DNA of 64,000 bases from Utricularia gibba. Taxonomy: Eukaryota > Plantae > Magnoliophyta. The translations under genes were made by a program, and so were the position numbers. Below are positions 12,541 to 36,594 of the stretch, piece by piece (within the stretch, counting starts at the first letter, position 1; each line of letters starts with the position of its first letter). Below the pieces are notes generated by a model. It did not search any database. It saw nothing but the letters and a program-made list of their open reading frames with translations, and was not told where the DNA came from. The DNA lies in the NCBI GenBank assembly GCA_002189035.1, contig NEEC01000004.1, forward strand, positions 2,170,001 to 2,234,000, in the 5' to 3' direction.

Positions 12541-13253
12541 GGCAAAACCAAAAGCAAAGCCATTAATGAGAAGAGATGGCCGAGCCAACCCATTTGTATA
12601 AATAAAGTTCTCTCTCACTCCACCATAGCTTAGACTTAGAGTACCTTTACTAGACTAACATTTAATTCCATGCATGAAAATGATCAGCTCTGAAAGGTAA
12701 AACGTGATGCACCTCACACCGCATTAAAAGGAGGAGATTCGAGATTGAAGATGTGGTGGAGTCAATAAAGTGATGAGCATGTTATCCAAATAACTTCTTA
12801 ATAAATTTTCTACTATAATACGTTGATTCCATTTATTTCCAGCATTTTAATTTAACACAAACAAACACTACTACATGATTACTGTACTGGAATGCTTTTA
12901 AAACGATGAAGAAATAAATGTTGCAGAACAGTACATAGGCTCAGTTGTCGCGGACCAACCCCTTAAGTATACCTTTGCCATGTACAACCGTCATAAGACG
13001 ATGCCTCTAGGAGAACATATCTACATTAGTAAGGGAAAACTGAAGAGTAATGGCATCTTACTACCAGATACACGATGGCACTTTCACTGTTTCTCAATAA
13101 CAATAAACAAATCCACTCGGCCCTCCACTAGAAGAAGATGGCAGGGGAATAAGTTTTCTTGTTCAATGCCAATCAAATGAGCTTCACCTATGTATTGACT
13201 CATTTCGAAAACATGGCTTTACTCTGTATTGTAGAATAAGAGACAGATGGCTT

Positions 13254-16200
13254 CTATGTTGTCAAGGCATCAGGGATATTCGATGGCGCACCGAGTACTT
13301 TACCTCCAACATCAGGAAAGCTTTCGTATCCAGGCAGAGAACTTACCTTTCCATCTGCATCCACCTTTACTGGATACTTGAGGATATGCCCATGCAGAGG
13401 ACTGAAACTCTCTGCTGAGAATTTTCTCCAGTTCTCTTCACTTAGGCTATTCACATATTTCACACATTCTGAGTTTTCGGGGTCCTTAAAGCAATCCTGA
13501 ATATTTCCCAAATGCTCAGCCCACAGAGACATCCTGTAACCATATATCTGCAAAACAAGTATAAGAGCTCATGAAATGGATAAGAGATTGCAAATGTATT
13601 CGCTTCTGTGTTGTTTTTTAAAAGTACCTGGCCCCGCGGGTGTTTCTTCATCCGGTCCCAAGTGTAATGGGGCTGATAGGCACCCATTGCGATCTCGGTA
13701 TCTCTAGAGCCAGCCAGCGATCGTTGGTTGATATTAGCAGAACCCATTAACACGTACTCATCATCTACAATCATACCCTTTGCATGCACATAAATCATGA
13801 ATCTTCCGGTTCTCTGAGAAGCTGAATCCTGAAAAATAGGAAAGAAACAAAATGTAAGCATCATTTACTGTTGGTTATACGGTAGAACTGTGGTGATGGA
13901 GATAAATTACCTTGGTGCCACTTAATAAATTCTGGTTATCCGTCGTAGGGGCGCTTTCTTTCACATCCTCTCTGTTTCCAAGGCAGTAGAAATTCAAATA
14001 GTCTGTAGGGCGTGCGTTCTTAAGCCCAGCTGATTTGAGTTCTCGAGCAACGACGTCATACATCATCTGCATTGTTTGTATCTGCAGGAGAAATCTTTGG
14101 AATTGAAGAAGCATTCGAGTGAAACGCATTCATTGATTGAGCTCCATGTTTCCTGTGTTATTAGTATCTACCTGCCAATAAAGGATTTCTTGAACAGAAG
14201 CAGAGCTTGGACTACCTTCCGGCCACATGGGTATAACAATATAAACAGCAAATCTTTCCTCGGCCCTTATTTTACTAGCCACTTTCAGCGCCAATTCCAT
14301 GGGAATTGTATTATCAGCACCTGCCAGAAACAATGGCAGGTTATTACAAGAAAACATATCTGCGCGGTTTGAGAAGAATCAAATTCAACTCCATGCCTGC
14401 ATTCTTGTAAGATGGCCAGGCATAAGATGAACCAAGGAAATACTGATTCTCAATGTATATGAAGTGTTGAGCCGATCTGATTGCCTGGATATACGCTGTT
14501 TGAATGCTCTTATCAATGACCAGTTTCTTTGCAAAAATTAAATTCTGCAGCAATTCAATGCTTCAAGAGTGAGAGAACTTCCAAGGATAGAGTATGAGAA
14601 CATGATAAAGGCATCTTGAAATACTTGCTGCTCTGCAGCCTGTGCAGTTTTGGGGAATCCCTTCAACGATCCTGAATCTATGGACCGGAAGATCTGGAGT
14701 TAAAAATGGACAACCAACAAATATCAAACAAAAGTTCCTTTTTCTCCTTAACAGTAATAAGGGGACCATTATCACTCGAAAAATACAAGTTGCTAACCTG
14801 AGCATGCCAATTTTCTGTATCACCTTCTCCAGAAACCCAAAGGGAAGGATGGTCATTTGGGACAGATGGACTGGGGCTGCTTATCCATGATATTCGCTCT
14901 ACTTTGAGTAGATTATCATCGTGCCAATGTGATATTTTCTTGAATGACCTGCCCATCTTGGACCATTTTGCGGCTTTCCTCCATCTCTGCTCGAAGTTTG
15001 TCAGCACATCATAAGCAGCTGGGCCTTCTATCTTGCAGTGTAGATCATGCCATGGTTGCCTAGGTCCCTTGGTTCCTGGCTGTAGATGCATACACATAAA
15101 GCGAGAGATGACAGCGAATATAGAAGACATCAAGCTACCGATAAATTTCCACTTACAGAGAATGTTGGGTTATGATAATCATCCTCAAAGATTGTGTCCA
15201 AATCACAAAACAGTCGATGCTCAGGGGTATCATAACGACCGTCACAGAGATCTAAACCACCGAGGAATGCAGTGATCTTTCTATTGTTTCCTTGTCCTTG
15301 AGTGTCCACGATCACGCATTTCTGATGATGAGTATATATAGTTCCTACAACCTTGATTCAATAGCACAATATCCAATTAAGCTCGCTCCAAGCGTCCTTA
15401 AAGTTGAAAAAGTGAAACCGTGCCTGCTGCTTGAAAACGCTGAGTTTGCTGCTTCCATAACGAGGGGCCAGCACGCAAGTCACAGATGAATGCTTGAAGA
15501 ACTTCTTCGTTTCCTCGTCGTGAGTTTGCATCACCCCAGTCTGCTCCAAAAAAGATTCATAATCAACAGAGGAATTTTGTTTCCAGACCCAATTTCAATT
15601 GTTCTCTCGCCAAAAAAGTATACGAACCGTATTGAATCTGCTATGTGAAGTTTTGTCATCCCAAACCAACAGAAGCACTCTCACACCTTCTTGAGATTTG
15701 TACTTCAGCAAATCGCCGAGATTCAGATCGCCGCCGTTTGGGAGTGGCCGCGTTGGCTCCCTGACCAATCTAACTTTGTGGTAAATTGACCACCCTACGA
15801 TGTACACCAAGTGATGCGCTTCCAGTATGGCGTGGCAAATATCTTCCCAACACTTGTCGTGTCGGAAATTTCCACCATCGTCAAGGGGAATCTCCGGCAG
15901 CATTTCGTCAGGCACATGCGCATCTTGATAAAGTGTTATTTGGCCGCCGTGACGGAGAGGGAAATAGCTTTCTTTGAGGGAGTAATCCTCCGGAATGCCT
16001 TTTAGGAACAGGGGATTCTGGGTACAAGGTGTAAATTCGATTCGCAATCTGAGGGCGGAGTTGGGCTTGTGAGGCTTACCCCAGGCTCCGATGACGGGGA
16101 TCCACTCGTCAATCAACTCACCGGACGCGAGTCTCTTAGCCGGCACGGAGGCGACGCCGATAACATCCGCCCCGAAGACATCATTGTCCTTCACCTCGAA

Positions 16201-16612
16201 ATCAACCTTCAAATCAAATTCAGAGAAATATCAATGCAGGCAGAAAGATGAAATCCTCATGAATCGATTGATTTTACGTTACCTGCGAAACAGGGTGAGC
16301 AGTGGGGATTTTGAAGTTTTCGTTCCAAACCGGATTCTGCGAATTCGGTATGATTCTGGTACGGGCGACCCTTGCTCCGGCGAGGCAAACGGTGACGTAC
16401 GGATCACTGGTGATGATCTTTCTGTGGTTTTTTCGATTCACGCGATGCTGACCGGTGGTGCACGGCTGCCGACACATGTCGAAAGCGGAGAGGAATCGGC
16501 GGACGTGCTCCGTGATGAGATCCATGTTGGGCAAGCATCGAGCCTCTATGATCTGCACCATCAGATCTCCGTGGAGATACACAACATCGTTTTCCGGCGA
16601 CTGTGCCGCCAT
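13254..16612 (-). CDS. PLDdelta: Phospholipase D delta (C2-PLD), 11 coding exons
   Basis: N-terminus [17 protein letters not shown] and C2 SDPYVTV; HKD1 [10 protein letters not shown]; [12 protein letters not shown]; HKD2 [13 protein letters not shown]; C-terminus [14 protein letters not shown]; the splice junctions I read keep the frame; two GC-AG introns. Confidence 0.96.
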
Positions 16613-19425
16613 GACTTTTTCGAAAATGCGTCGTGGCGGAGAACGGTGGTTATTCAGCGTCTCCGCCGGCGGGGCGATGATGGATGGCGGTTTGCCTTTC
16701 CGCCAACTTTTTTTAGAACATAAACGGGCCTACAACGCTGTTTGCGCTTTTGTCGGTTATATGCCTCGCCCTCCCCCATCGCATACTATTCTTAGGATCA
16801 TATTCTTTTTCTTATCTTCTGATGACTAAGAGAATAGAATCATCAAATAAAAGCAATATGTTAATTAAAACAAAAGTATTTAATGCATTAAATATACAGC
16901 ATTTTGGTTATGGAGGGCATTCCGCCACTGAATGCCACGTGTACATTAAATCGATTTGAGATTTGGAAACCTTTATACGGGAAGGTTCCACTCTGATTCC
17001 ATGAATATTTTCTTTTAATATATATATTTTGAAATTATTAAATTGAATTATTTACGTAAACCAAAATTATCCTAGAATTCTGTAGCAGCAATTGTGCTGT
17101 AGAGGTACAAAGTAGCAAAGGAAAACATTCAAGACCAAGGAGAAATCATGAGAGGCATAGCCATAAACATAATCTTTGCTCATTCAACGGGTTTTAAAAA
17201 TTTAAAAAATGTTACCAAAGAAGTAAGATAAACAAATGATTTTCCATGTAATATTTTTATCTTGGATCGTCATCCTATTATGCTAAGCATTCTAAATTAA
17301 CACCACAACACCAAAGCAAATGTGATTACATATGCTTACTGATTATATAATTTAACATAACAATATAAAATAATTGTATTATATCGATTAAAAGACCATA
17401 CTTTCATATATAATAAAAAATATAAAGTTAAGAAATTCAGTTAGTTCATTTAGGTAAGTCTTCTCAATTTTTTTTAAATCTACCCTCTTAAAATCAATAT
17501 CTTCTTGGAGGGACTGCTTAGTGCTTGCCTTTTTTTTTTAATTCGTTCTTTATCCTTTGGGTTTTTTAATCACATGTGGAGTTACATATGTCCAATTCAT
17601 AGTTCACTGCATAAATGTATGATAAATTTGATTACAACTTATCAATATTTAATTAATGAATAAAACCATTATCTTTGGAATTTTTGTGATAGATGTATTC
17701 TCTGTCTTTGATACAATGATTTTTACTTTACATACACTTCCTCATGCTACATTGTTATATATATATATATTCATTTATTTGATTAAGTTACTTCAAATCA
17801 TGTGACCAACTATAATTCCCATGATATCATAAATAAAACATAAAAAATTCGTCAAAAGACTTAGAACATCTTTATTGATTTCCGGAAATGATGATATGGC
17901 TTCTTTTATTGAGTTTACATGAGGAAACGAAATTTTCTGAAAGTGATTTCTGCAGTATAGAGTTTACTCAAATTAATTATTTTTCATAAAAATAAAAGTG
18001 ATTTTCAGAAAACCATATTAACATTTGTGGAAAGCCATGTCAGTATTTCTGAAAATCACTAAAAATGATCGTAATCTAGATTATTTTTTTTACTGTATTT
18101 AAAGAGGATATAGAACTAATTTTGCTCTATCTATATTCTATTGTATCACCTTATAATTATATGAAATCTTAAATAATAAACTTTGGATGTAAATGATGTA
18201 AAAGAATTCCTGAGTCATTTGTTTTTAAGTAAACATTAAAATTATTTTGCTAATTTAAAAATAACACATATTTAACTTGAAAGTAAGGCTGTCTCTATAT
18301 TTAATGAATATTATTGCATTGCCAAGCCCTATAATAGATATTTCTACTATCTTATTATCCATTCTTACATCGTCAAAAAATATAATAATTTTTTTGTAGT
18401 CCTGTTCTTATCAAATATTGCAAGCAAATTGTTGCAATAAAGCCATGACTTGTATCTTATATGATTATACATATTCGTATTATATTCAACATATAATGAA
18501 AACAATTGTAAATAAAATTAGTAACAAACTTTATTAATGTATAAGAAAATTGAGAATCTATTAAAATTTTATCAAAAACTCATCGCTATCATTTAACATT
18601 TTCATGGTGTCAAACTGGTTGCTAACTTTGAAATGAAATCTATCAATATATGTTAGTCTTTTTTTAACTATAGACATTTTAATTAATATGTAGATAAACT
18701 CATATATTTGACTATGGACTTAAATTTTTAAAAAAACATTTACTGCTACTTGATGATAGCTTGGTTTTTTTCTAACCTCCACTCAAATTGGCATATTGGT
18801 TCTAATGCTTGTATGAGAAATTTCTCCTTATTTGGTTTTTAGTGACACTTATTCTTTTCCTTAACATTCACGATTTATCGAAAAACTTTATAAAAAATAG
18901 TTACTACTAAATTAAAAATAATGTAAAAAAAAAACCTAGAAAAATAAATTTCTCCATTAGTAAAATTCATAATCATACAAGCATTCATGTATTATGATTC
19001 CATCACTAGAATATATTTTGGAGTAGATTTTATTTAAAAGGTATTCAAAAATATCAATTATATCATAACGTATAAAAACATCACGATGTACATTTCATTA
19101 TATTTTAGAATTGAGATTGGATGCCTAGTTAAAAAAAAAATTTAATAAGATCTTAACATAGAAAATACTTTAAAAATGGAAATGGAAATTTAAAACTCTT
19201 ACTTCCCATCAATTCGGTAAAAATTAAGGCTAAAAATGTTAATTTAGTCAATAACAATAGATTATTAAAAATTTTAATTTATTTTTTAATAATTATAAAT
19301 CTAATCTTTATCATCCATCAATCAAATATAATATTTTAATAAATCAAATTCATTCACCAAACACAGCGTTTATTTAAACATTTTGGCTTATCATCTTTAA
19401 TAAATATTTTAATAAAATGTCAACC

Positions 19426-19486
19426 AGCCCACTGGTCCTACTTTCTGGCCCGATTTCGCAATTCCTATTGGGTCCCTAAACCCTAA
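19426..19486 (+). promoter_or_regulatory. Site II-like (AGCCCA/TGGCCC) and telo-box (AAACCCTAA, 19478-19486) promoter elements
   Basis: Motifs visible just upstream of the 5' UTR of the PGES2-like gene; this combination is common in plant housekeeping and mitochondrial-protein promoters. Confidence 0.5.
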
Positions 19487-19856
19487 CTAAACCTTGCATC
19501 TGCAAGATTTTCTCCGCGCAAGGGCTCTCCAGGTATACAGCGTATCTCACAGAAAGCTCCATCGGATTCCACAGGCAAGCCGTTCGTTTTTCTCACCTAC
19601 AGTACGGACAATCAGGAAATCTAGTTTAATTTTGCCTCTGAAGACGAAAAATTAGGGTGCAATGATGTGTTTGTTTTCTCAATGAATTAGTGATCTTCCG
19701 TCTGGAATTATTGATGTTTACTAGAGGTTGAATAGAGAAGAAGAGTAGGTGACTATGATTTTTCTTCAGCACAATAAGTTTATTACCGTGTACCCTACCA
19801 AGGCTTGCTTGGGAAAATTATTGAATTTGTGGTTCTTTTGTCTGCGTGGTTCAGAA

Positions 19857-21909
<2,053 letters not shown>

Positions 21910-22236
21910 TTCAAGATACTTTGGCTGACCGGAATAAGTGCCCTTCCCACCTGCCCCACCGGAAGTGGACATCGACCTGTTACAATGAAATGGAGGAGCT
22001 CGTATTCTTTGTTATATTATTCGACAACGTTTCGATTTTTAATCATATTTACATGTGTACTGTTTTCACCTTGCATTGAATTGGATAAGATGAACGTACA
22101 AGCACTCTGCACAGGTGGTCTGAATAGTTCAAGATTATGGGACATGCTTCAGCGTCGGTCTAATTCGTTGGCCCAGGCCCAATTTGGTAGTTTCTAATGT
22201 AAAACGGGCCTCAGTCCGACTCTAGAAAGAAGATGA

Positions 22237-22585
22237 ATGGCCTTGCAATTGCAGGATTTCCTCCTCCGCGCTAGGGTTCTGAAGCTTTACAGACAAGCCT
22301 TGCGTGTCTCACGGAGAGCGCCATCCGATTCCAGAGGTCAGCCGCGCACTTACAGTACATTTAAGTAGGGAAATGCAGTGTTAATTTTACCTGTCGAGAA
22401 GAAAAGGTGAAGTCCAGGGGCGATCCGGATTTTTGTGTGTTTCAGATGAGATTAAGCGGATTGTGAGGGAAGAGATGGAGAGCAACAGAAGCTGCAGAGA
22501 TCGGCAAAGGATTCGGTTTCTGATCAGCGAGGGGCTGGAGAGGCTGAGGCGCTTGGATGAGACTCTTGATATGCAAGGAAACTGA
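22237..22585 (+). CDS. Small LYR-motif (Complex I LYR family) protein, 79 aa, exons 22237-22336 and 22446-22585; not in the ORF track
   Basis: Spliced product MALQLQDFLLRARVLKLYRQALRVSRRAPSDSRDEIKRIVREEMESNRSCRDRQRIRFLISEGLERLRRLDETLDMQGN*; LYR tripeptide; closely resembles At3g19508 as remembered. Confidence 0.9.
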
Positions 22586-22792
22586 AACACATTTTTCGGT
22601 AAACGATTTATTCAAACAATCCGTAGTTTATTTTCGGAAGGGAACGTCTAGCTCATGTATTTTTTTTAAAATTTTTGTAGAGGTCGTAACTGGAATTTAG
22701 AATTAGAACATGAAATTATAACGAAATACAACGAAGGAACTCAGTCCATAGAATAAAATTTTGGCTGTGGGTAACTTCCGAGAGTCAATCCA

Positions 22793-23741
22793 TCAATTCT
22801 TCACATACCCCGCCAGCTTGAACCGATCAACGGCGCCATCCTGAACCTGAACCACGACGTTTTCCCCAAATTCCGCGCCTAAGAAATCCATCACAAAATC
22901 CTCATCTGGCGTCGAGGAGTAAAAGCAAACCACGACATTTTCCCCCAAATCCAGACGTCGGTCAATGATAAACCGCACCAGCGCCTCCACCAGATTTCGG
23001 CTCCGGCATGCACAGAGATTTGGATGAGTCCCGGGAGCGGATCGCCGGAGCTCGAGAAAGCAGGAAACCTGCTATCAGTGGTGAATGTGTCTCAGCTCCG
23101 TCTTTGATTCTCCAGTACAGGGCAGTTGCCTCCAGTGGTTGAATTTATTTTCTGGTCCGAACCCCCGCCCTGATTACGCATTTCTACATGGGAATTCCCC
23201 GCACTCGACGGGGCGTAGCACTGTTTCCCTTGTCAATCCGTCCTTGAAGGTGTCAATTACACGTTTGTTGTCCTTTATAACGGCGCCGTGGCACAAGGCC
23301 AGCGCTTGAAACATCGCCACAGCTTTCACCACCGCCACCCAGTCCTCCGGAAGCCAGAAAAGACCGGAAAACTCCTCAGTTGATTCCCCTGGAGAATTTT
23401 AATATTTGTGGCAAGTTCAATGACTTGGAGCAGTGATTCGCTCTGGGATGGGCGACTGGTTTTGAAATAGACACTGAACCCCGCTTCAGCCTGGGCTTCT
23501 TCCCAGGGGCGAGAAGATTCTAAAACCACTTTGGGATAGAGTTGCTACCTGTAATTGAGGCAGGCGGTCCGCGAAGAACCCGGAGTGGTGGAGGAAACGG
23601 AATTGCTGGAGAAGAAGGGTGTAGAGCCGTCTTTTTGCGGTGCGCTACGCGGAGGCGCTGCCGGCTGCCCACAACCCCGGCATCACAAGCGTCGGGTTTG
23701 TGCGATGGAGTGGGACTTGCTGGATGATTTATGTCATCCAT
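22793..23741 (-). pseudogene. Sarcosine/pipecolate oxidase (SOX/PIPOX-like) pseudogene, intronless
   Basis: Collinear motifs across frames: AKRRLYTLLLQQFRFLHH; PWEEAQAEAG; FSGLFWLPEDW..KAVAMFQALALCHGAVIKDN; KCVIRAG; PLEATALYWRIK; PGLIQISVHAG; CFYSSTPDEDFVMDFLGAEFG; GFRMAPLIG; at least 7 frameshifts and in-frame TAGs. Confidence 0.88.
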
Positions 23742-23829
23742 TTCTAAAATCCACCCCATGTCAATCATCCTTTCCATGTGCGAAAACACACATTATGAAT
23801 CCTTTTATTGGATAATTAATCGCTTGCAA

Positions 23830-24165
23830 ATCATTGATACGTGTGTTTTATGCTTTTGATGCATTGCGCTGAGCCTATGGATATGTTTCGTTACATCGAT
23901 AGATTAACAAAAAATTAATAATATTAAAGTGTTCATGTTCTTTACGTGATCCACTAATGACCAGCCATCACTTGATTTTGTCCTTCTTTGTAGATTTGAT
24001 TGTAACTTTTTTCCAATAATATTTTTTGAGTTATTATTATTTATCAACAACTCAATTAAATTGGAAAACATACTTCTAATTTATGAATTAGTTATTGATT
24101 TCATTTTAAGTTTTTTTTAGGGTTTTAAGGAAATAAATAAATTTACTGTTTGATCATAAAGATTG
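23830..24165 (+). repeat. Diverged direct-repeat copy of 27378-27710 (non-coding 5' region of the hAT-like element)
   Basis: Shared collinear blocks such as tatgaattagtta.tgatttcatt and ttaaggaaat..a.aaattt...ttgatcata. Confidence 0.65.
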
Positions 24166-24169
24166 GTCA

Positions 24170-26150
24170 TTCTCTAATTACTCGTGCTTTTTATTTATCT
24201 ATCGCTTCTCCTATATTACTAACAATATACCTAAGAAAAGAAATATTATTTCTATAGAATACACATTTTTTTTATGTTAATGAACACTTTCTCTTTTTCA
24301 AAAGTATCTAACATATACTTTAAATGACACACATGCTCATTAATACTCTTGCTATAAATAGGAATATCATTAAAATAAATAACCACAAATCTAACAATGA
24401 AGGGTCTAAGAACATGATTCATTAATCTCATAAAGATACTAATAACACTAATCAAATCATAAGGCATAACAACCTACTCATATAAATCAAATTTAGTTTT
24501 GAATACGATTTTCCATTCATCACTTTCCTTCATTTTAATTTGATGATATCCATTTATCAAATTAAATTGAGTAAAAATAAAAACACCATGCAATTTATCA
24601 AGCATAATTTCAATTCTACGAATAAGATATCTATACAGATAGTGATATTGTTGACTCAGTATTTTCTTAGTCTTCTTGTTTTCTTACACAAAATCTATAA
24701 ACATCAATTCTTCTATTTGCATTTCTATTTTCTTAATCTTCTCCAGATTGACTCATTATGATGGTCAGTTGAAGAGTTGTGCTCTAGGTATAAGGTAAAT
24801 TTGATACTTAATTACTTTGATGGGAAGCAATTGATAAAATTCTTCCAAAAATACAATTTGATATACCAATAATAGAGACACAACACAAAATAGGATTTTG
24901 TTTACCATTCACAAAACAATGTGTTTGAAAAAAGTTTTTTCTTTGTTCATTATTGTTATTAACTTTAATATTATGTATCTTTCGAGTGACTAATACTTCT
25001 CCCGAAAAAGGTATTTCATCCTCATTACTCAATTCATCCACTATCTCCAAAACATTATCATTGTCTTGAGTAATCAATTCTCTACTACCTTTCATTCCCA
25101 TTGCTCTTTTATTTAGACATTTAAAAGCAATATGTTCATATCTCAAAAATTGGAAACATTTTATATTCCTTGTAATGTCCTTTGGCAATCTTATTTGCTC
25201 CACTTTCATGAAACATGATGAGGTGTTGAATTTAAAATTTTTTATAAATAATTGTCCTATATTCTTTTATAGTATTTACTACATATCTCCAAATTTTGAA
25301 ATAAGAGCCCTCTTGCTGAAATTTGAAGAAAAACGCTTGTTCGTGAGTTATTTCTGAACTTTTGAAGCCATATGAATCATTGTTGTGTATCGTTTTCTCA
25401 AAAAATTTTAAATATGTCAAACGTAAAACACAAAAGAGTGTAGTACAAATATCAAATTACAACATAATCGTTGAATTTCATGAAAGTCAATCTAATTTGC
25501 TTTCCTTTGGAGTAGTTATTGCAATCAAAGACATGTTTTACTCAAATTTTCTATTATAGAAAAAAATCCGGATCATTTTTACCTTGAAATTCAAGAATTT
25601 TCATCTTAATATTATTAATATCTCTTCCATTTCTTTACACTTCTCTTAACCACCTTTGTTTCGAAATTGTCTTTTATCATCATCTACATTCTCATCTTCT
25701 CCATGTTCAAGATAAACTTCATCTTTATCATCATTCAAAATTCTATCTCTTCTTCCCACACATCTTTCATTTTCTTGATCACTAAAATCAAGTTTAATAT
25801 AGTTGCGTTGAAACATTCACACATCTCGACCCCTTCTAGCAACATGATTATATCCTACATCTTAAATTTTTCCAACATTTTGAAGAGAATTTGTGGGTTC
25901 ATTAAGTCTCTCATTGATATTTTTTAGAACACGATACAATTTTGAAAATTCTTATTGCATGACTCTAAAAATGAGCTTGTCATCTAACGACTCATCTTTC
26001 TCATGCTCGCTTTTTGAATTTGACATACTAAAACAAAGAGAAAAAAAATAAATGAAAAGAATGTAGGAAACATAAATGGATTTTACCACTAAATTCTCAA
26101 GCTTTAAATTCTTTTGTGCACTCTTGAATATTATTATACTAGATCTCATG
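24170..26150 (-). mobile_element. Highly degenerate Ty3/Gypsy retrotransposon (gag knuckle, protease region, RT fragment; CRM-like)
   Basis: RT FMRLMNHVLRPFIVRFVVIYFNDIPIYSKS (24252-24467); CFQFLRYEHIAFKCLNKR and EQRKNFFQTHCFVNGK (24808-25209). Confidence 0.8.
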
Positions 26151-27377
26151 GTACATCAACAATTAAATCTTTTCCATATGGATAATAGTTATGGTGTGAT
26201 GATAGAATAAAGTAAGGTCAAGAGTGATAACTTAGTCAACATATAGATAAAGGAGAGTGATTGAATTAAAGTATGATCAATAAATTGGTTGCTTGTTGAA
26301 ATAGATAAATAAGAGGAATGAGCAATAAACAAAAGAGAAGAGAAATCTGGACACTAAATAATTGGGTTTTAAAATGCAAATATATTGTTTGTTGAAATAG
26401 ATAAAATAAAATAATGATCAATAAACAAATATAATTTTATATTGAATAATTGTAATCAATAAATGACATGGGATGAGTATTCAACTTTAATCATATCTTT
26501 CATATAATTGAGGTTGATCTTTAATGTGTTCTTGCTATTCCATTGAGAATGAATTTCGAGCTCATCTTCAACAAACATATTTTTCACTATTCTTTTTTTT
26601 CTTTGTTTTACCAACATATAAATAATAGAAAATATCATGGCTTTTTTTTTCTTGAAATTAGTAGAAAAAGAACTAAAGTTATGATCAAAAGAGAATAAGA
26701 TGATGATAAAAAGAAGGAAACTCAAGCCTCTGATATTAAATGATGTGATCGTCTATAGTAAAAGATATTAGTAACCCACAAACATGAGTAAGCTAGTCCT
26801 TCAAAGATAACTCATTCAAGTGTACTATCAAAAAAATGAATCTACTACAATTAAATTATGAAAGAAATGGAATAATTACGAGTCACATTTACAAATGAAA
26901 AAGAATTGAAAATGATAAATAAAACATAATCAAGCGCTTAAAGAAGAGTAAATTTCTAACAAAATTAAAAAAACAAGCAAATATCAAATTATTACCAATT
27001 AAATTCAAACTAATTAAGAAATACTCATCAAGTATTATAATAAATATCAATTAAAAGATAAATTTTATATTTTATGGTAATTTTACTTTAAAAGTAGTTG
27101 AACTTCTTTATGGATAATACTCTGAGTATAATTTCTAACCTTATATTGTTTATTAAAGATTAAAGTGTAGCTTCATTTTTTTGGCCTTCACTTGTTATGA
27201 TTGATTCAAGTAGAATAATTTTACAATCCAAAGTATTCACTTGTACAATATTGTCATTATTTTTCAAATGTTGTTTATAATCTTGCAGGGTTTACTTACA
27301 TATTATGCATGTTTTTACTCGATAACTATTGGTGTGTTGGTGACACAATATACAAAGGTTGGGCTGTTCGCTACAAA

Positions 27378-30250
27378 ATATTGATGCATGTGTTTTATGG
27401 TATAGATATGTCAGATATACGCTTGATATATTGATACATGGGTGTGTTATGATACATTGCTATTATTGTAGAAATTAAAATGTTAAATTTCTGTTACTCT
27501 ATTAATACTATCCATCATTTGATTGTGCTCTACTTTATTGATTTGATTGTTACTCTTTTCTACCAATATTTTTTGGATTAATATTAATTATTAATAACTC
27601 AAATAAGTTGAAAAATATATTTATAGTTTATGAATTAGTTAATGATTTCATTTAAAGTTTTGTTTTAAGGTGTTAAGGAAATGAAGAAATTTGTTTCTTG
27701 ATCATATCTGTTTTTTTTAGATATCTCATCGCAATCCTCAAGAGAATATAGATTCATATTTTATAAAGTTGGAAGAAATTGCAATTGGACCTAATAAAAA
27801 TATTGATGATAACAATAATGATAAATAGTCTTTATGATCAAATAATGATAAAATGAAGAAAAAAGTTGTAAAAAAACTAGTGTAGTGGAAATTGATGATA
27901 GCTTATTTGTAAATCAAGATCTTTAAAATTGTATTTATCGTCATCTAGTCCCTTGAGATGATATTAAAGGAAGACATATACACAATTTGAGATAGATAAT
28001 ATTTTAATATAATGATATTAAATACATATCCAATTAATATCATAATTGATAAGATTTTTTTTACTCAAAATAAATTCTATTTTATCTTGCAAGTAATCCG
28101 TACTATGTTGAGACTTTTTCTATTATTGCATTAAGAATAATTTCAGGTGAATTATATTTATATTGAAATATTATAATTTTATCTTATATATTTTATTATA
28201 TTTATCTTTTAAATTGTAAATTATAAACCATCTGAATATAATAAATTGGGGACAACCTTTTTAAAAAATGAAAAAGCATGTATTGAGAAAATATTGACTA
28301 CTACACAAAATACTTCATATTCTTTAGGATTAATTTTGACGTTTGATGAATACAGCGATTTACAAAATATATTGTGATAAATCTCATAGCTTTCAATAAG
28401 GGTTATATAATATTCATTAAAACAATAAATTGTGAGTGAAAATTCAAGAATATTAAGTATGGTTCTTCATCATTTGAAGATTATTAAAAAAATTGATCCA
28501 TCAAAAGGTAATATAAGTTGTTTGGACAATTCAAAGATGTGTAGGGCTATTGATTGAATTATATAGAGAAAATATTCTAAATTTGTTTATTTTATTGATC
28601 ATTATTTGATTTGATGATTAATTTGAATGTTTTTTTACATATTTTTTGTTGTAAATAAGTTGTATTGTTTTGCTTTTTCAAATATTTTGGGCTCTACACA
28701 ATTTAAATCTTGCTCTCAAGAATTTGTGTAACCAAAATAAAAATATTCAATCAGGTATGAAACATACAAAAGTATTTATGATGTCACAACTAGAATGGTA
28801 ATGATTAAGTATTTATTATTAATCACTACATGAGGTTTTTCTTGGTTAAGAAATATTATTGATGAAACAGGGTTTATCTTGATTGTAATTATATTTAGAA
28901 GATTTGTTTTGTTTAAAAAAGAACTGAAGTATTTTTTAATTAGTAAGGATTGGTGTGGGTATCAAAATGATAATATCGTGAAAGTTATAAAAGTGAGATA
29001 AGTTTTGCTGAGTTATTCTTTTTTAGATTATGTTGAGTTTATAATCTCTTTTACAAATTTAATCGATGAGATTTTGAGGTTGTGTGATACAAATGAATCA
29101 AATTTGCATTTAATTATTGGGATTTTTGACTCCGTTTGTATGAAGATGAAAAAAACAAAATGCAATTATGAACAAAATCATTCTTATAAAGAGAGTTTTT
29201 TTGGGTGTATTGTGAACTCGATGCTATTAAAAAGAAAGAGTGAAAGTTTGACAATATTGCATGCATTGGCTCACACTTTGAATTTAAGGTATGTTTTGAA
29301 TATTGAAACGTATATTTAAGGATATGTTTAAAGTTGTTTAAACATTAAAGATAACTTTGTTTGATATTATGATTACCTATTCTTTTGATAGTGTTTACAA
29401 AGAATAATGGAAGAATGAGCATTGCTACTTATTGAATATTGCAAAAGATAAAGAATTAAAACATTCGAAACGAGAATTTGTTAAGCGTTATTTTCTTAAT
29501 CAAGAAAAACAATTAGATGTATATGGTGTTATTGCAAAGTTTCAAGCTTGGTTATGTGATTTTGGTATCACTGATGCCATGATTGAAAGATTAAGGATGA
29601 AATTGATTATATGGTAATTTAATTTTTGAATATGAAAACCTACAATTCAAACTTAGCTATGAAAATGTTTGGTCATATTTTATTTTTTTCAACTTGTGAG
29701 AAAAATTGGATTACTTACAAACAAGTTCATACATTATGTAATAAGGCACAAATAAATAAATGAAAGAGCTGAAAATGTTCTGTTTATTTATAATAATTTG
29801 CGTCTTCTATTAAAATGTTCATATATGATGTTGTGAGAGTAAATTATGAGATATTATGGGAGATACAAATATTGGCATTTTGAAGAATACAACTATTTCA
29901 TTCTATAAAAATGAATTCAAAATGGAAGAATTGAAATTAATTGTTTAAACATATTGGTGTGGATGTTGAAAGAGTTTATATGAAAAAAATTATTATAATT
30001 TTGATATGTTATTTATTTTGTTATATATTTATTTATTTTAAGATGAGTTTTTAATTAAATATATTTTATCTAATTTATTTGTTATTGATTTTTAATAATA
30101 TTTTATTTTTATATTAATAAAAATAATAAATTTTAAATAAATGTATATTACTTGTATTTTAATAATATATTTTTAAATTTATCCTATTTATATCTTTGTA
30201 TCTGCATGTATGATAAATTCATATCCATATTTTGTCGATTGTTTTCCAGT
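27378..30250 (+). mobile_element. Highly degenerate hAT element (DUF659-type transposase remnants)
   Basis: DYVEFIISFTNLIDEILRLCDTNESNLHL..FDSV..KMK and LHALAHTLNLRY (29005-29319) match this hAT subfamily; strongly AT-shifted with many stops. Confidence 0.7.
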
Positions 30251-31692
30251 GAAGTTAAATCTAATAATGTTGTTTAAGATGAATTATTTTACAAACAGTG
30301 AACTCATATTATGAATGATGGGTTAAATCGGATTTAAGCCAATTGTTTTAATTTAATGTTTTTAAAATTTCACATTTTTTTAAATGTTTTATGAAAATGA
30401 TTAAAGTACAACGCAAACAAACGAAAGCATGTATTTGAATGGAGTATTGAAAACAGGAGAAGGAGGATGAGGATGAGGGAGAGGGAGGCTACGACCGGCC
30501 CATAGAGGCGTTGATCTGATTGAGTTGACGTGGGCCGTCCGATGCAGCAGCAGGTGGGGATCCCCATCATCATCATCATGCATCCATTCCCATTCCTTAT
30601 TCATTACTCCCCGTATTTTGTAGCTCAGCCTTCCACTGCCCCCGTCCCTGCCACCTACGCCTCCGTACCATTTAGAAATTTGGAAAAATTCACAAGTTTT
30701 TAAGAAAAATAAAAGATGCCACATGGGTTTGGGTTGGGATGCCCACTCTCCCTCTCTCTCATAACCAGAAAAATTTAATTGATTGTTGTCAATTTTTTCA
30801 AGTACATGTCGCCAGATTTCTAAATACCCGGTTCTCTGGTTTACAAAAAAACTAATGTTTATTGGCTGGTGAAATTGGATAATTGGTGATGATAGGTATA
30901 TCTTTTTTACATTTTCATGATGTTGAAAATAATTTAATAATTTAAATGTGAGACATGTTTGAAATATTTATTAAGATAATAACTAGGACACATTATTGTT
31001 GTTTTGAATACATATCTAAAATTAAATGAATACATCATTACTTTAAAATAATATATATAATTATTTAAGTAATAATACATTGAATATTAAATCTATAGAG
31101 TAACAAATTTTAAATAAAAAATATTATATTTTTTTTTAAAAGAATGGCTTTTGGAGTGTCGGCGTGGCTTGTGATTCAAGCAATGCCCAATTGCCCACCA
31201 TCCAAAAAAAATTAAAAAATATAATAAGATATATAATAGCAGAATATATTATTATTTTAATTATATTACAAAGTATAGGAATTCAAACGTAAATTTTCAT
31301 GAATAATATAAAAATACAAATAAATTTAAATTTATTTTTCAAGGCAAGAAATTATTTTTTAGCAACAATTATTTGCGATTATAATAAAATTATAATCATA
31401 TATAAATTCAAATTTGTTATATTGAAAACTATTTATTATAACATTTGAAAGTATCATTTTAATAATCAATCATTTATCACTCGTTTATTGATATCAATGA
31501 AATGGCATATAATAAGCTATTTGCTAATATAATATAGTAGATTTATATTCAACTTTATAAATATATTGTTTTTTATATAGATATGCCATTTTTATAATCA
31601 TTTTTTGAGCATATGGAGAGAGAATCTGATTATATATATACTAATCACATAATCAAACTTGTATTTTAAGATATTAAATATTATTTATAATC

Positions 31693-31694
<2 letters not shown>

Positions 31695-31730
<36 letters not shown>
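31695..31730. repeat. (AT)n microsatellite
   Basis: Run of about 18 AT dinucleotides. Confidence 0.95.
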
Positions 31731-31734
<4 letters not shown>

Positions 31735-33507
31735 TTATTTATTTATATTTATATCTAATTATGCTATATTTAAACATACTAATATATTAATATTAAACCA
31801 ACTTTTGAGGTTATCGTGGTTACTGATACACGGAAATTAGGTATTTAGAAATACTTGTGATTTAGGTTTCCAAAATAGATGAGGTTTATAAAAGTTTTAT
31901 AAAATAAATGATGTTTTTGTTTTAATTTATAAAATAGATGAAGTTTAATATAATTAGTATAATATATTTTAATTAATTTCATAAAAATATTTTACTCTAA
32001 TTAAAATTTGTAAGGAATAGATATATTTATTATAATATAGTTTTCGTAACGAATTTATATTATTTTATTTATTAATCATGTATGATTATGTAAATAAAAA
32101 ATAGAGACATCATTACAGTGTGGAATTTATGTTAATAACAAATATTAAAATTAACGAATTGTAGTATTTTACAAACTATTTTAAATTAAAATAGTGTATG
32201 TAGTAAAACACTAAATGAGCCAGATAAAAAACAAATATATATTTTCTATATTATCATTAATTAATAAAGCATTAAATATGTTAAATATAAGATTTTCTAT
32301 TATTTAAAACATATAAAATCAATCATCATTTATTTTACACAGAAAATTTAAAATATATAACTTTGCAAATGAAAATATATTAGTACGTAGAGATACCCAA
32401 CGCAGCCGTACTGATACCACTAATCCCCAAATCTTCTGTTCACTGCAGGATTTGTAATTATTTTTAGGAGTACAAGCAAGCAAATTATGTACTGCAAATG
32501 CAGCATACCATCGGAATGCTCTTCACATAACTTCACCTAATGCTCCTCGGGCTTAATAACTTCAATCGGTTTAGTTAACTTTTGTAGATGTAAAAATGCG
32601 TATATTTTCAAAATTATATGAAGGCTGAGATTTGATGGAATTTTAAAAATTTTAAAGCATTCCCCAAATAATGGGGGCAAAACCCACAAAACCCTCTCGC
32701 TTTCTCTCACTCTCTCTCTGCGGATGATATAAATGATGTAGGGGTCCCGCCACCCTTCCTTGCTTCTCTTCGTCTTCTTCTTCTTATGCTGCTGTTCGGC
32801 TTCTGGTTCTGGTTCTGGTTATGGACGCTGCTGCACTTGTCTCGGTAAAGCACAAGGATGGATGGGGCTGTCAGAGGAGATGAGATGAGATGAGGGAGGC
32901 CCCTCGGCCCCTCGGCCCCGCCCGACTGTCTGACTGGACTGACTGACTGACTGACTGACTGGCCGACGACGATACGATACGACGCCTGAGTTCATTTGTC
33001 AAGGGAAATCATTTGGGGGATGGATCGGGATCGGGCGTATCTGGGCTGGATCTCTATCTGTATCTGTATCTGTATCCGGATGTCATTCATTCCTTCACGC
33101 CGTCAAAAGATACGCCTCCTGTGTGTCTAACGGCGGCACGTGACCTGTCCCGTCCAAGCTGCCGCCCAAACTACACCACCACCCCCCCCCCCTAAACCCA
33201 CCCCAACCCTACCATGTTTTTCCTTTTACCATTTCCGGAAATTCCAGTGTTGAAAGATTAGCCCTTCATTTGGGCCTGGGGGGACCCCTCGTAATTGTTG
33301 GAAGATTGGAAAATCCAATAATTAGGGCTTCATGTATTGGTAAGATCATTTGTCAACTTTTATTCGTCATTTGCCTTCACAACATAATTCTTCTTTTGTC
33401 TCGCACAGAAAGACAAAAAGCAAGATAAAAACCACTTGATGAGAGCAGGAAACCTCAACAAAAAGCTACACATCCTCATCTGTCGAATCTTCGCAGCTAT
33501 CGCGGAT

Positions 33508-36500
33508 ATGGAACTCCCGCTTCGTCTTCTTCCTCTAATCATCGTCATCTGCCTCATCCGATCACCGCCTTTCCTCCATGCACAGCAGCACGCCGATCTG
33601 CAGACCCTTTTGGCCCTCAGGTCTTCGCTCCTCGGTCCAGGTGGGGAAGGGCTCCACGACTGGGTTCCGCCCTACTCCGCTGCCAACGTTACATCTCATT
33701 GCTCTTTTTCCGGCGTTGCCTGCGATGAAAACCACCGCGTGGCCTCCCTAAGCCTAAAAAATATTCCTCTTTTTGGTTCTATTGGGCCCGAAATTGGGAT
33801 GCTTCAGAGCCTTGTTAATCTCACCCTCGCTGGAGTTAACCTCACCGGTCAGTTACCCATGGAAATCGGTAACCTGGTATCATTGAAGTACGTCAATCTG
33901 AGTTGGAACATGATCAATGGAACACTTTCTGGGAGAATGTTCATGAGAATAACAGAACTTGAAGTGTTCGACGTGTACAATAACGAGTTTACAGGGCCGC
34001 TACCGGCGGAGTTCGTCAAGTTGCGGAAGCTCAAGTATTTGAATCTAGGGGGGAATTATTTCTTCGGCGACATCCCCGAGATTTATTCCGAGTTTAAGGC
34101 CTTGACTCATTTAGCCTTGCAAGGCAACTCTTTGACAGGGAGAATCCCTGCAAGTTTGAGCAGAATACAAACTCTCCAACAGCTTTATCTGGGTTACTTC
34201 AACAGTTACGACGGCGGAATCCCACCGGAGTTTGGTTCAATGAACAATCTACAGCTTCTCGATCTCGGCAGCTGTAATCTTTCAGGCGAGATTCCGGCGA
34301 CCCTTGGAAATCTCAAGCATCTGCATACTTTATTCCTTCAGGTAACTTAATAATTACAACGCAGTTTTCTTTACTTGACGCCACTGTACAAATTTATTGA
34401 GGGGTCATTTTTTGTCTGTGTAAGGTGAATAATTTGACTGGACAAATTCCGGCAGAGCTCTCTGGCCTTACAAGCTTAATGTCTCTAGACCTCTCCATCA
34501 ACAATCTCATTGGAGAAATCCCAGAAAGCTTCTCGCAACTGCAAAACTTAACACTCTTAAACTTGTTCCAGAACAATCTCCGTGGCCCAATTCCAGGATT
34601 TATCGGAGGCCTGCCGAATCTTGAAGTTTTTCAGATATGGAACAACAACTTTACACGCGAGTTACCTGAGAATCTTGGCCAGAATGGGAAGCTTTTGCTT
34701 CTTGATGTTACTCAGAATCATCTTACGGGGATGATTCCGAGGGATCTTTGCAAAGGAGGAAGATTAAAAACTTTGATTCTTATGGACAATTTCTTTTTTG
34801 GACCACTGCCGGGGGAGATTGGTGCGTGTATTTCTTTGAGGAGGATTAGAATCAAGAATAATTTCTTTAACGGAACGGTTCCTCCAGGGATCTTCACACT
34901 GCCATTATTGGACATGCTTGAGCTTGATAACAATCTCTTTAGCGGAGAGTTGCCTGAGAATTTTTCGGATAACACATTGGGAAGCCTCACTCTATCAAGG
35001 AATTCTCTTTCGGGGACTATACCACCGGCGATCGGGAAATTGTTAAACCTTCAGATTCTGTCCCTGGATATGAACAACTTTTCTGGCGAAATTCCAGGTG
35101 AAATTTTTGATTTGGAAAATCTTTCTAAGCTGAATCTCAGTGGGAACTATTTGACGGGTGGAATTCCGGCTACCATCAATCGTAGCACCCACATTACCTT
35201 CATTGACTTTAGCCGGAATAATTTATCCGGTGAGATTCCGACGTCGATCTCCGGGTTGCCGATCCTGAACATTCTGAACCTCTCAAGGAATCAGCTAATT
35301 GGAAATATCCCCGAAGAAATTGGGTTGATGAAAAGCTTGACAGTGTTCGATGTTTCGTATAACAATTTCTCCGGCAGACGGCCCACGACAGGGCTTCTGA
35401 AGGATCTCGATGACCGTTTCTTTGCCGGCAATCCAAATCTCTGCACGACTCATGGCGCCGCATGTGATTCATCTTCACTCGCGTCTCAGAATACTCGCAA
35501 AAGGCATGAACCAAGGATCTTTTTGATCGTGTTGGTTATCGTCCTGTTCTCCATTTTTTTGGTACTTCGGCATTATTTTTCCGGGAAATCGAGAGCTTGG
35601 CAACTCACAGCCTTTCACAGGCTGAACTTCACCGCTGAGGATGTCCTTGACTGCCTGAGAGAAGAGAACATTATCGGCAGAGGTGGTGCGGGCATCGTTT
35701 ACAGAGGATCCATGCCTAACGGAACCGACATCGCCATTAAACGGTTAACCGGGAAACCTAATAGCTGCGGTGATCATGGTTTCTTGGCGGAGATTCAGAC
35801 GCTGGGGCGGATCAGGCATCGTTACATTGTAAGGCTATTGGGTTACGTTTCTCTGGAAGACACAAACTTGCTGCTCTACGAGTACATGTCCAACGGTAGC
35901 TTGGGAGAGATGATCCACGGCTCCAAGGGCTCCCATCTGCAATGGGACACTAGGTACCGCATAGCAGTGGAGGCTGCGAAGGGTTTGTGTTATCTGCACC
36001 ATGACTGCACTCCGGCGATCATCCACAGAGATGTGAAGTCGAACAACATTCTGCTCGACTCCGATTTGGAAGCTCATGTAGCTGATTTTGGGCTTGCTAA
36101 GATCTTGCACGACGCTACCGCGTCGGCGAGCATGTCCGCCGTCGCCGGGTCCTACGGCTACATTGCTCCTGGTAATGATTTCATCACTGTTTGTTTGGAG
36201 TTTTTCAATTTTCTGCTTGATTGATTGATGTGGGGTTAATGGAACAGAGTATGCGTACACGCTGAAAGTGGATCAGAAGAGCGATGTGTACAGTTTCGGG
36301 GTGGTGCTACTTGAGCTTATCACCGGCAGGAAACCAGTTGGTGGGTTCGGCGATGGCGTGGATATCGTGAGATGGGTCCGGAAAATAAAGTCTGAAACGT
36401 CTCCCCCCTCCGATGCTGCGGTGGCCCTGGCGGTGATCGATTCCCGGCTCACCGGGTACACGGGGAGTGCGGTAGTGAATCTGTTCAAAATTGCGATGCT

Positions 36501-36594
36501 TTGCGTGGAGGAAGATAGCTCCGGTCGGCCGACGATGCGCGAGGTGGTTCATATGCTCGAGAATCCACCGGCTATCAGCCTTGCCACCGTATGA
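33508..36594 (+). CDS. CLV1: CLAVATA1-like LRR receptor kinase, exons 33508-34341, 34425-36171 and 36248-36594 (975 aa)
   Basis: [15 protein letters not shown]; [10 protein letters not shown]|VNNLTGQIP; [33 protein letters not shown]; [11 protein letters not shown]; HRDVKSNN; DFG; SDAAVALAV; [11 protein letters not shown]; these fit CLV1 better than BAM; an upstream in-frame ATG exists at 33439. Confidence 0.92.

Follow-up and report, generated by a model that had tools for sequence, protein, structure and literature searches.

We conclude that the two extra introns in a 64,000-nucleotide stretch of Utricularia gibba DNA (referred to here as the window), one in a CLAVATA1 (CLV1) orthologue and the other in a phospholipase D (PLD) gene, are most probably ordinary and unrelated introns that were gained in two independent, ancient events in the Lamiales and inherited by descent, with no introner-like mechanism involved (we put the probability of this reading at about 0.85). 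The initial annotation had proposed that both were lineage-specific gains produced by an introner-like or common repair-mediated process; the introns are instead old, unrelated to each other and single-copy in the window.

The gene carrying the first of these introns (33508..36594, plus strand) has a coding sequence of three exons for 975 amino acids, and its LRRNT_2, LRR and Pkinase domains (Pfam), its best matches to Lamiales proteins named CLAVATA1 (72–74% identical, with CLAVATA1, HAR1 or FON1 as the top names) and its place in a gene tree that matches the species tree, where it is sister to Genlisea aurea CLV1, point to a CLAVATA1 orthologue and thus an LRR receptor kinase. Exon 1 (33508..34341, 278 aa) includes the signal peptide, LRRNT and first LRRs, exon 2 (34425..36171) the remaining LRRs, the transmembrane segment and the N-terminal two thirds of the kinase, and exon 3 (36248..36594) the C-terminal part of the kinase. 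Intron 2 (36172..36247, 76 nt, phase 1, ..YIAP(E)|YAYT..) is the canonical kinase-domain intron, which is present at all seven orthologous CLV1 loci compared. The extra intron 1 (34342..34424, plus strand, 83 nt, GT..AAG) falls within the LRRs in phase 0 between Gln and Val codons (..LHTLFLQ|VNNLTG..) and reads TTCAG|gtaacttaataat...tgtaag|GTGAAT; its splicing is predicted from sequence logic and conservation.

The second extra intron is found in a minus-strand gene (13254..16612) with 11 exons and 10 introns encoding 844 amino acids. A C2 domain was matched (Pfam) in exon 1 (16283..16612, 110 aa), which contains the N-terminal half of the domain, exon 2 (15628..16206, 193 aa) shares 79% identity with a Handroanthus 'Phospholipase D', the exon matches are named Phospholipase D or Phospholipase D delta, and the PLDc and PLD C-terminal Pfam families are present at the orthologous loci. 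With an N-terminal C2 domain, no long N-terminal extension and catalytic exons downstream, the gene is a PLD-delta-type C2-phospholipase D, an assignment which leaves aside its exact subclade relative to Arabidopsis PLD-delta. The extra intron 1 in the C2 domain (16207..16282, minus strand, 76 nt, GT..AAG) is also in phase 0 between Gln and Val codons (..AHPVSQ|VDFEVKD..) and reads CGCAG|gtaacgtaaaat...tttgaag|GTTGAT from 16282 to 16207. The joined coding sequence is open throughout in a check of frame and intron phases, and in a read test of splicing confined to the PLD gene (3,501 letters) all ten introns were seen as joints in RNA-like contigs. The C2 intron was spliced out in the RNA-like contigs of X3 and X4 (joint 16204>16281, cut +2, CT..AC on the plus strand), which skip exactly 76 nt here as well as the other nine introns; the X1 DNA contigs show no skip at the PLD introns that they cover, with the C2 intron itself beyond their coverage.

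Each of the two introns begins with GTAAC-N-TAA, ends in AAG and carries AGGT at either junction, and the exons around them align gaplessly to orthologous proteins. From their termini and the continuous frame they interrupt, they would both be U2-type GT-AG spliceosomal introns, presumably removed at present by the spliceosome as for any short plant intron; neither length is divisible by three and therefore neither can be coding, and in each the third in-frame codon is TAA, where translation would end if the intron were retained. The positions, lengths, phase, Gln|Val context and AGGT junctions are exactly as described in the initial annotation.

The same introns occur in other Lamiales families. 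The CLV1 LRR intron was found at the identical codon boundary in Paulownia (L001, 100 nt), Buddleja (L009, 719 nt) and the species of SRR31865531 (L002, 82 nt), and the PLD C2 intron at the identical boundary in Handroanthus (L003, 115 nt), Genlisea (L008, 150 nt) and, again, the SRR31865531 species (L004, 101 nt), which is Salvia-like and carries both; lengths range from 82 to 719 nt for the CLV1 intron and from 76 to 150 nt for the PLD intron. The gene models of Paulownia, Buddleja, Handroanthus and Genlisea already contain the introns. Because the positions are identical in these families, the introns are older than the window's lineage by tens of millions of years, which argues against a gain specific to that lineage. 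The initial annotation would have given up its proposal if both positions were present in distantly related orthologues, or if the genome-wide gain rate were no higher than in other angiosperms and new introns shared no signature; the positions do recur in orthologues from other plant families, and no signature is common to the two introns.

Both introns are nonetheless supernumerary, as had been suggested. CLV1 exons 1 and 2 are contiguous in Olea (L006), Coffea (L010) and Ipomoea (L012), all of which keep the kinase intron as their only one; the LRR intron is not known from Arabidopsis or rice CLV1 either. The closest PLD relative without the C2 intron (L011) has the classic 10-exon structure with the other nine introns kept, and the potato PLD-delta1–5 genes likewise have 10 exons (PMC8389595). 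The C2 intron is further absent in L005 and in 90 uninterrupted reading frames, where absence means continuity at the level of the open reading frame, taken together with the literature. It should be noted that the word search behind these comparisons, run one exon at a time, covered proteins of 0.55–1.75 times the query length (the longest PLD exon is 195 aa), that several of the PLD sequences derive from sequencing runs, and that the Oleaceae are sampled by one CLV1, with no Oleaceae orthologue in the PLD comparison. Literature searches on the PLD family in the Lamiales, and on whether CLV1 is documented to have just one intron, gave nothing usable.

Phylogenetic analysis places the carriers together in each case. 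In the PLD exon-2 tree the four verified carriers and eight N-truncated frames form one 12-row clade (SH-aLRT 97) which contains none of the uninterrupted frames, all 90 of which lie outside it. We have counted the eight N-truncated frames as 'unknown' and not as carriers, since an open reading frame starting at an internal GTG is no proof of an intron: that of P0205 (L005) does so and yet is contiguous with exon 1. The CLV1 tree follows the order of the species tree, with the Oleaceae sister to the core Lamiales and the window gene sister to Genlisea, and all four carriers fall within one core-Lamiales paralogue clade, this being the one of the two such clades in which intron status was read.

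These distributions suggest that each intron arose once, independently, in ancestors of the core Lamiales. The CLV1 intron would have been gained after the split from the Oleaceae, Solanales and Gentianales and before the Scrophulariaceae, Paulowniaceae, Lamiaceae and Lentibulariaceae diverged, and the PLD intron probably on the stem of the clade with the Bignoniaceae, Lentibulariaceae and Salvia-like species. The original insertion mechanism is no longer readable from the sequences.

Two clade-specific gains in about ten genes exceed the typical angiosperm gain rate expected for a random window, so gain may have been elevated for a time on the Lamiales stem. In its fullest form this would have both introns gained on the same short core-Lamiales stem after the Oleaceae split, in a burst perhaps linked to the genome duplication which gave the two CLV1 paralogue clades, and with the same CLV1 LRR independently hit in the Solanaceae. 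We regard such a burst as unlikely; if it did occur, the second hit in Solanaceae would point to a preferred target context in long LRR exons.

It is also improbable that the two introns go back to the early asterids, the early angiosperms or further still and were lost repeatedly elsewhere with no gain in the Lamiales. What looks like a single gain in plants can instead result from several parallel losses, and in five grass genomes 118 'single gains' were set against 652 single losses, a loss of about 5.5 times gain, with many apparent gains becoming recurrent losses once outgroups were added (PMC4256211). Precise loss also occurs amongst our sequences, as shown by PLD intron 3, which is no longer present in the SRR31865531 species. 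However, the PLD carriers are nested several nodes deep among the 90 uninterrupted sequences, such that at least 7–8 separate losses would be needed, and some of the uninterrupted groups cluster with gene models of Ginkgo, Musa, Cinnamomum, Gossypium and Trapa. For CLV1, separate losses would be required in the Oleaceae, Gentianales, Convolvulaceae and Solanaceae, and in Arabidopsis and rice as well. Were parallel losses to replace a single gain, the introns would be even older than we suggest.

We consider very unlikely the proposal of a lineage-specific and possibly active introner-like or repair-mediated process acting at AG|GT proto-splice sites and leaving AGGT duplications and a GTAAC-N-TAA...AAG signature. 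It has in its favour that both introns are extra relative to the outgroups, resemble each other at the 5' end and have AGGT at each junction, and that the empty PLD site in L011 is GAG^GTG, a proto-splice site; the empty CLV1 sites in the outgroups, however, are CAA^ATA, CAA^CAG, CAA^ATG or CAA^GTG and not AG|GT, and both introns are common to other Lamiales families. Nor does AGGT serve as the mark of a target-site duplication, as had been suggested: AG|GT is found at both junctions of four of the 12 verified introns of the PLD and CLV1 genes, including the old canonical PLD introns 3 and 7, and no terminal repeat or target-site duplication beyond the same AGGT repeat was seen at either extra intron. 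The GTAAC...AAG signature fares no better as an insertion mark. The orthologous CLV1 introns start gttata, gttaga or gtgatt and have tag or cag acceptors, and the orthologous PLD introns start gtaaca, gcaatc or gtgagc and have cag acceptors, so that among the orthologous introns compared a GTAAC start is found outside the window in Handroanthus PLD alone. The AAG acceptors, and the GTAAC start in CLV1, thus appear to be derived in the window's own lineage; as the orthologous introns do not have them, they are not relics of insertion.

The introns themselves are no more alike than shuffled sequence. Their local alignment score is 14 compared with 14.6 ± 2.3 for shuffles, which bears out the caveat in the initial annotation that the interiors are not clearly homologous, and no further copies were found by blastn in the 64 kb window, where matches were chance ones of 12 nt or less; kinship of the two introns to each other or to window sequence was rejected on these grounds. 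A second caveat, that AAG acceptors are not confined to the extra introns, also holds, as AAG is used by three of the 12 introns of the two genes, and six of the ten PLD introns have a phase-0 junction after a Gln codon. The features common to both introns therefore amount to not more than chance and generic splice-site biology. Under the reading we prefer, of two independent Lamiales gains, part of their resemblance would come from features generic in these genes (exon ends that read AG|GT, and a CAG Gln codon ahead of a phase-0 junction) and part from drift in the window's lineage, which gave the AAG acceptors and the GTAAC start of the CLV1 intron.

A separate observation concerns the CLV1 gene of Solanum commersonii, which has an LRR intron of its own in phase 1, located 16 nt downstream of the Lamiales position. 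This is flanked by an 11-nt direct repeat (GACTTACAGGT / GATTTACAGGT) with a spacing of exactly one intron length, and the repeat supplies both splice sites. A second sequence, amongst eight weak matches in the CLV1 exon 1 word search, seems to be interrupted after ..MNRLTG, as Solanum CLV1 is by its intron.

The Lamiales and Solanum introns occupy the same LRR of orthologous genes at a distance of just 16 nt, which speaks for descent from a single ancestral lamiid intron by sliding. Such sliding is highly improbable, and we rejected it because the shift is not a multiple of three (phase 0 vs phase 1), VN(N/R)LTG, a run of six codons, follows the Lamiales intron and precedes the Solanum intron in a way that boundary drift cannot yield, Ipomoea, Coffea and Olea have neither intron, and the Solanum intron has its own flanking repeat.

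Confirmation of the introner idea would have given flowering plants their first evidence of an active introner-like process, but the idea does not hold. What stands are two well-bracketed Lamiales intron gains, one in a gene for a receptor kinase and the other in a gene for a phospholipase. Cleanly documented angiosperm gains are uncommon, and the two introns can be used as phylogenetic markers for the core Lamiales and as test cases for estimates of intron-gain rate. No paper describing them was found in literature searches, which were not aimed at these introns.

Compared with known gene structures, the window CLV1 has its kinase intron at the place expected from the canonical single-intron form, and the window PLD shares nine introns with L011 and Handroanthus, in keeping with canonical 10-exon beta/gamma/delta PLDs; each differs in having one more intron, which splits the long first exon. 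Introners and introner-like elements, which occur in some algae and fungi, form families of mobile introns, and the likeness of the window introns to these is only superficial (they are short, extra relative to outgroups and flanked by AG|GT). In contrast to introners, they have no multi-copy family in the 64 kb window, no mutual similarity, no terminal inverted repeat or target-site duplication beyond the 4-nt AGGT and no sign of recent insertion, and they are common to several plant families. They are closer to the single gains described in grasses (PMC4256211), which likewise involve a short GT-AG intron with monophyletic carriers, outgroups with all of the other introns and no source sequence, and differ from these in being placed in the Lamiales, in CLV1 and a PLD-delta-type gene. 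Models for such gains include duplication of an AGGT-containing exon segment, or insertion with target-site duplication (PMC4256211); in the window introns AGGT is the longest repeat left, and such a mechanism may or may not have produced them. It is the Solanum commersonii CLV1 intron that fits these models, and as the duplication which gave rise to its splice sites is still present on either side, it offers a clearer view of mechanism than either of the window introns.

Both introns were found on reading the sequence as the initial annotation had claimed, with the first intron of the PLD-delta-type phospholipase D (PLD) gene as CGCAG|gtaacgtaaaat...tttgaag|GTTGAT (minus strand, 16282 to 16207, 76 nt) and that of the CLAVATA1 (CLV1) orthologue as TTCAG|gtaacttaataat...tgtaag|GTGAAT (plus strand, 34342–34424, 83 nt). 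Each is in phase 0 with a Gln codon before and a Val codon after, reaches a TAA at the third in-frame codon, and is of a length not divisible by three. The exons beside the PLD intron encode the C2 domain, and those beside the CLV1 intron encode LRRNT, LRR and kinase domains (hence the C2 and LRR introns).

X3 and X4, runs of a single study, provided RNA-like contigs that map to the PLD gene and leave out ten segments with GT/GC..AG ends, including the exact 76-nt C2 segment, and contigs from the DNA run X1 are unbroken across the part of the gene covered (13200–15450 and 15885–16450; this coverage includes introns 3–10 and not the C2 intron). After refinement, the PLD gene is modelled with 11 exons, and a local check showed its frame of 844 codons to be open. 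The CLV1 model consists of three plus-strand exons (33508–34341, 34425–36171 and 36248–36594), with the canonical kinase-domain intron at 36172–36247. Here the LRR intron is a predicted one, supported by a stop codon and frame shift on retention and by conservation in other species; hypothetical retention would meet the stop two codons in (34342–34350) and give a product of 280 residues with the signal peptide and an LRR fragment. We also note that one short contig from X11, a slightly divergent accession, leaves out 81 nt of PLD exon 2 (15999–16079, minus strand, GT..AG ends, in frame), and this single-contig skip, with a loss of 27 residues, may represent an exitron or an intron that is used alternatively.

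CLV1 exon 2 shares 72–74% identity with CLAVATA1 of Paulownia, Sesamum and Erythranthe, and PLD exon 2 shares 79% identity with a Handroanthus phospholipase D. The CLV1 tree, which elsewhere matched the species tree, grouped the species of run SRR31865531 with Salvia and made the window and Genlisea aurea sisters (SH-aLRT 97). In the Handroanthus locus (L003), PLD exons 2 and 3 are present in two copies with equal scores (109–902 and 3384–4177, ~3.3 kb between them), as a result of local duplication or else as an artefact of assembly, and the gene appears as two separate models in the public annotation.

The introns had been proposed as possibly lineage-specific, and this was contradicted by the presence of both positions in other Lamiales families. 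The CLV1 boundary, ..LFLQ|V/INxLTG.., is identical in Paulownia (100 nt), Buddleja (719 nt) and the SRR31865531 species (82 nt), and the PLD boundary, ..HPV(S/T)Q|(V/I)EF.., is identical in Handroanthus (115 nt), G. aurea (150 nt) and the SRR31865531 species (101 nt). When 121 PLD exon-2 pieces were placed in a tree, a single clade (SH-aLRT 97) gathered the four verified carriers together with eight N-truncated frames; it held no uninterrupted sequences, and all 90 of these fell outside.

The view that both introns are supernumerary was upheld by the CLV1 outgroup loci and by uninterrupted PLD sequences. CLV1 exons 1 and 2 are directly joined in Olea (L006), Coffea (L010) and Ipomoea (L012), and these are not retrocopies because all three have kept the kinase intron. 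On unspliced genomic contigs, 90 PLD reading frames were called that are unbroken from the C2 domain across the junction, and the closest uninterrupted locus (L011, 76% identity) is missing the C2 intron alone, with its nine others where expected.

A single gain in each gene is the simplest account, with the CLV1 gain placed after the split of the Oleaceae and before the Scrophulariaceae, Paulowniaceae, Lamiaceae and Lentibulariaceae diverged, and the PLD gain on the stem of the clade with the Bignoniaceae, Lentibulariaceae and a Lamiaceae-like species. Both gains would date back tens of millions of years. Two gains in about ten genes might suggest that introns were for a time gained at a higher rate on the Lamiales stem, but the pair is weak evidence for this because the window was chosen for this very feature among ~1,600 windows of the genome. 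Parallel losses of ancient introns can pass for gains, a known pitfall (PMC4256211), but under this reading PLD would need no fewer than seven or eight losses and CLV1 no fewer than four, and the introns would, if it were true, only be older.

The proposed common signature was not borne out. Local alignment of the two introns gave a score of 14, against 14.6 ± 2.3 for shuffled sequence, and no further copies of either were found across the 64-kb window. The orthologous CLV1 introns start with gttata, gttaga or gtgatt and end with tag, cag or tag, and the PLD orthologues start with gtaaca, gcaatc or gtgagc and end with cag; because these ends differ, we regard the AAG acceptors and the GTAAC start of the CLV1 intron as later changes on the window's own lineage. 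AGGT also occurs at both junctions of the canonical PLD introns 3 and 7, and six of the ten PLD introns are in phase 0 after a Gln codon, intron 3 likewise being Gln|Val. The empty PLD site in the nearest intron-free relative, GAG^GTG, is a proto-splice site; the empty CLV1 sites in outgroups (CAA^ATA, CAA^CAG, CAA^ATG or CAA^GTG) are not.

Of the 12 verified introns, three end in an AAG acceptor (PLD 1, 16207–16209; PLD 3, 15352–15354; CLV1 1, 34422–34424) where the orthologues have CAG or TAG, and this lineage may have a relaxed requirement at acceptor position -3. Judged by the RNA joints, PLD introns 3 (15352–15423) and 7 (14321–14396), both on the minus strand, are GC-AG; the intron 3 donor is GC in Handroanthus and GT in Genlisea, and the intron 7 donor is GT in Handroanthus and the SRR31865531 species. 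The latter has precisely lost intron 3, with PLD exons 3 and 4 contiguous (L004:966–967).

In Solanum commersonii, CLV1 carries a separate 444-nt intron in the LRR region (L007:1333–1776; phase 1, ..VNRLTG|RIP..), which lies 16 nt downstream of the site occupied in Lamiales (compare window 34342–34440) and is missing from Ipomoea, Coffea and Olea. It is flanked by an 11-nt direct repeat (GACTTACAGGT / GATTTACAGGT, 10/11 matches) spaced by exactly one intron length, both splice sites come from the repeat, and reading frame P0241 appears interrupted at this position. It seems to be an additional gain, on the branch to Solanaceae, whose mechanism can still be read. That the Lamiales and Solanum introns are one intron that slid is made very unlikely by their different phases, by six codons lying on one side of the intron in Lamiales and on the other in Solanum, by the outgroups (Ipomoea, Coffea and Olea) having neither, and by the repeat peculiar to Solanum.

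Shared with other Lamiales families, dissimilar and with no signature in common, the two introns do not support a lineage-specific, introner-like or common repair process. We read the PLD C2 and CLV1 LRR introns as two old gains in Lamiales, independent of each other, that today act like ordinary introns, with splicing predicted in the case of CLV1. The PLD model can be compared with the 10 exons of potato PLD-delta1-5 (PMC8389595) and the 9–12 exons of beta/gamma/delta PLDs from Arabidopsis, rice, poplar and grape (PMC3095279).
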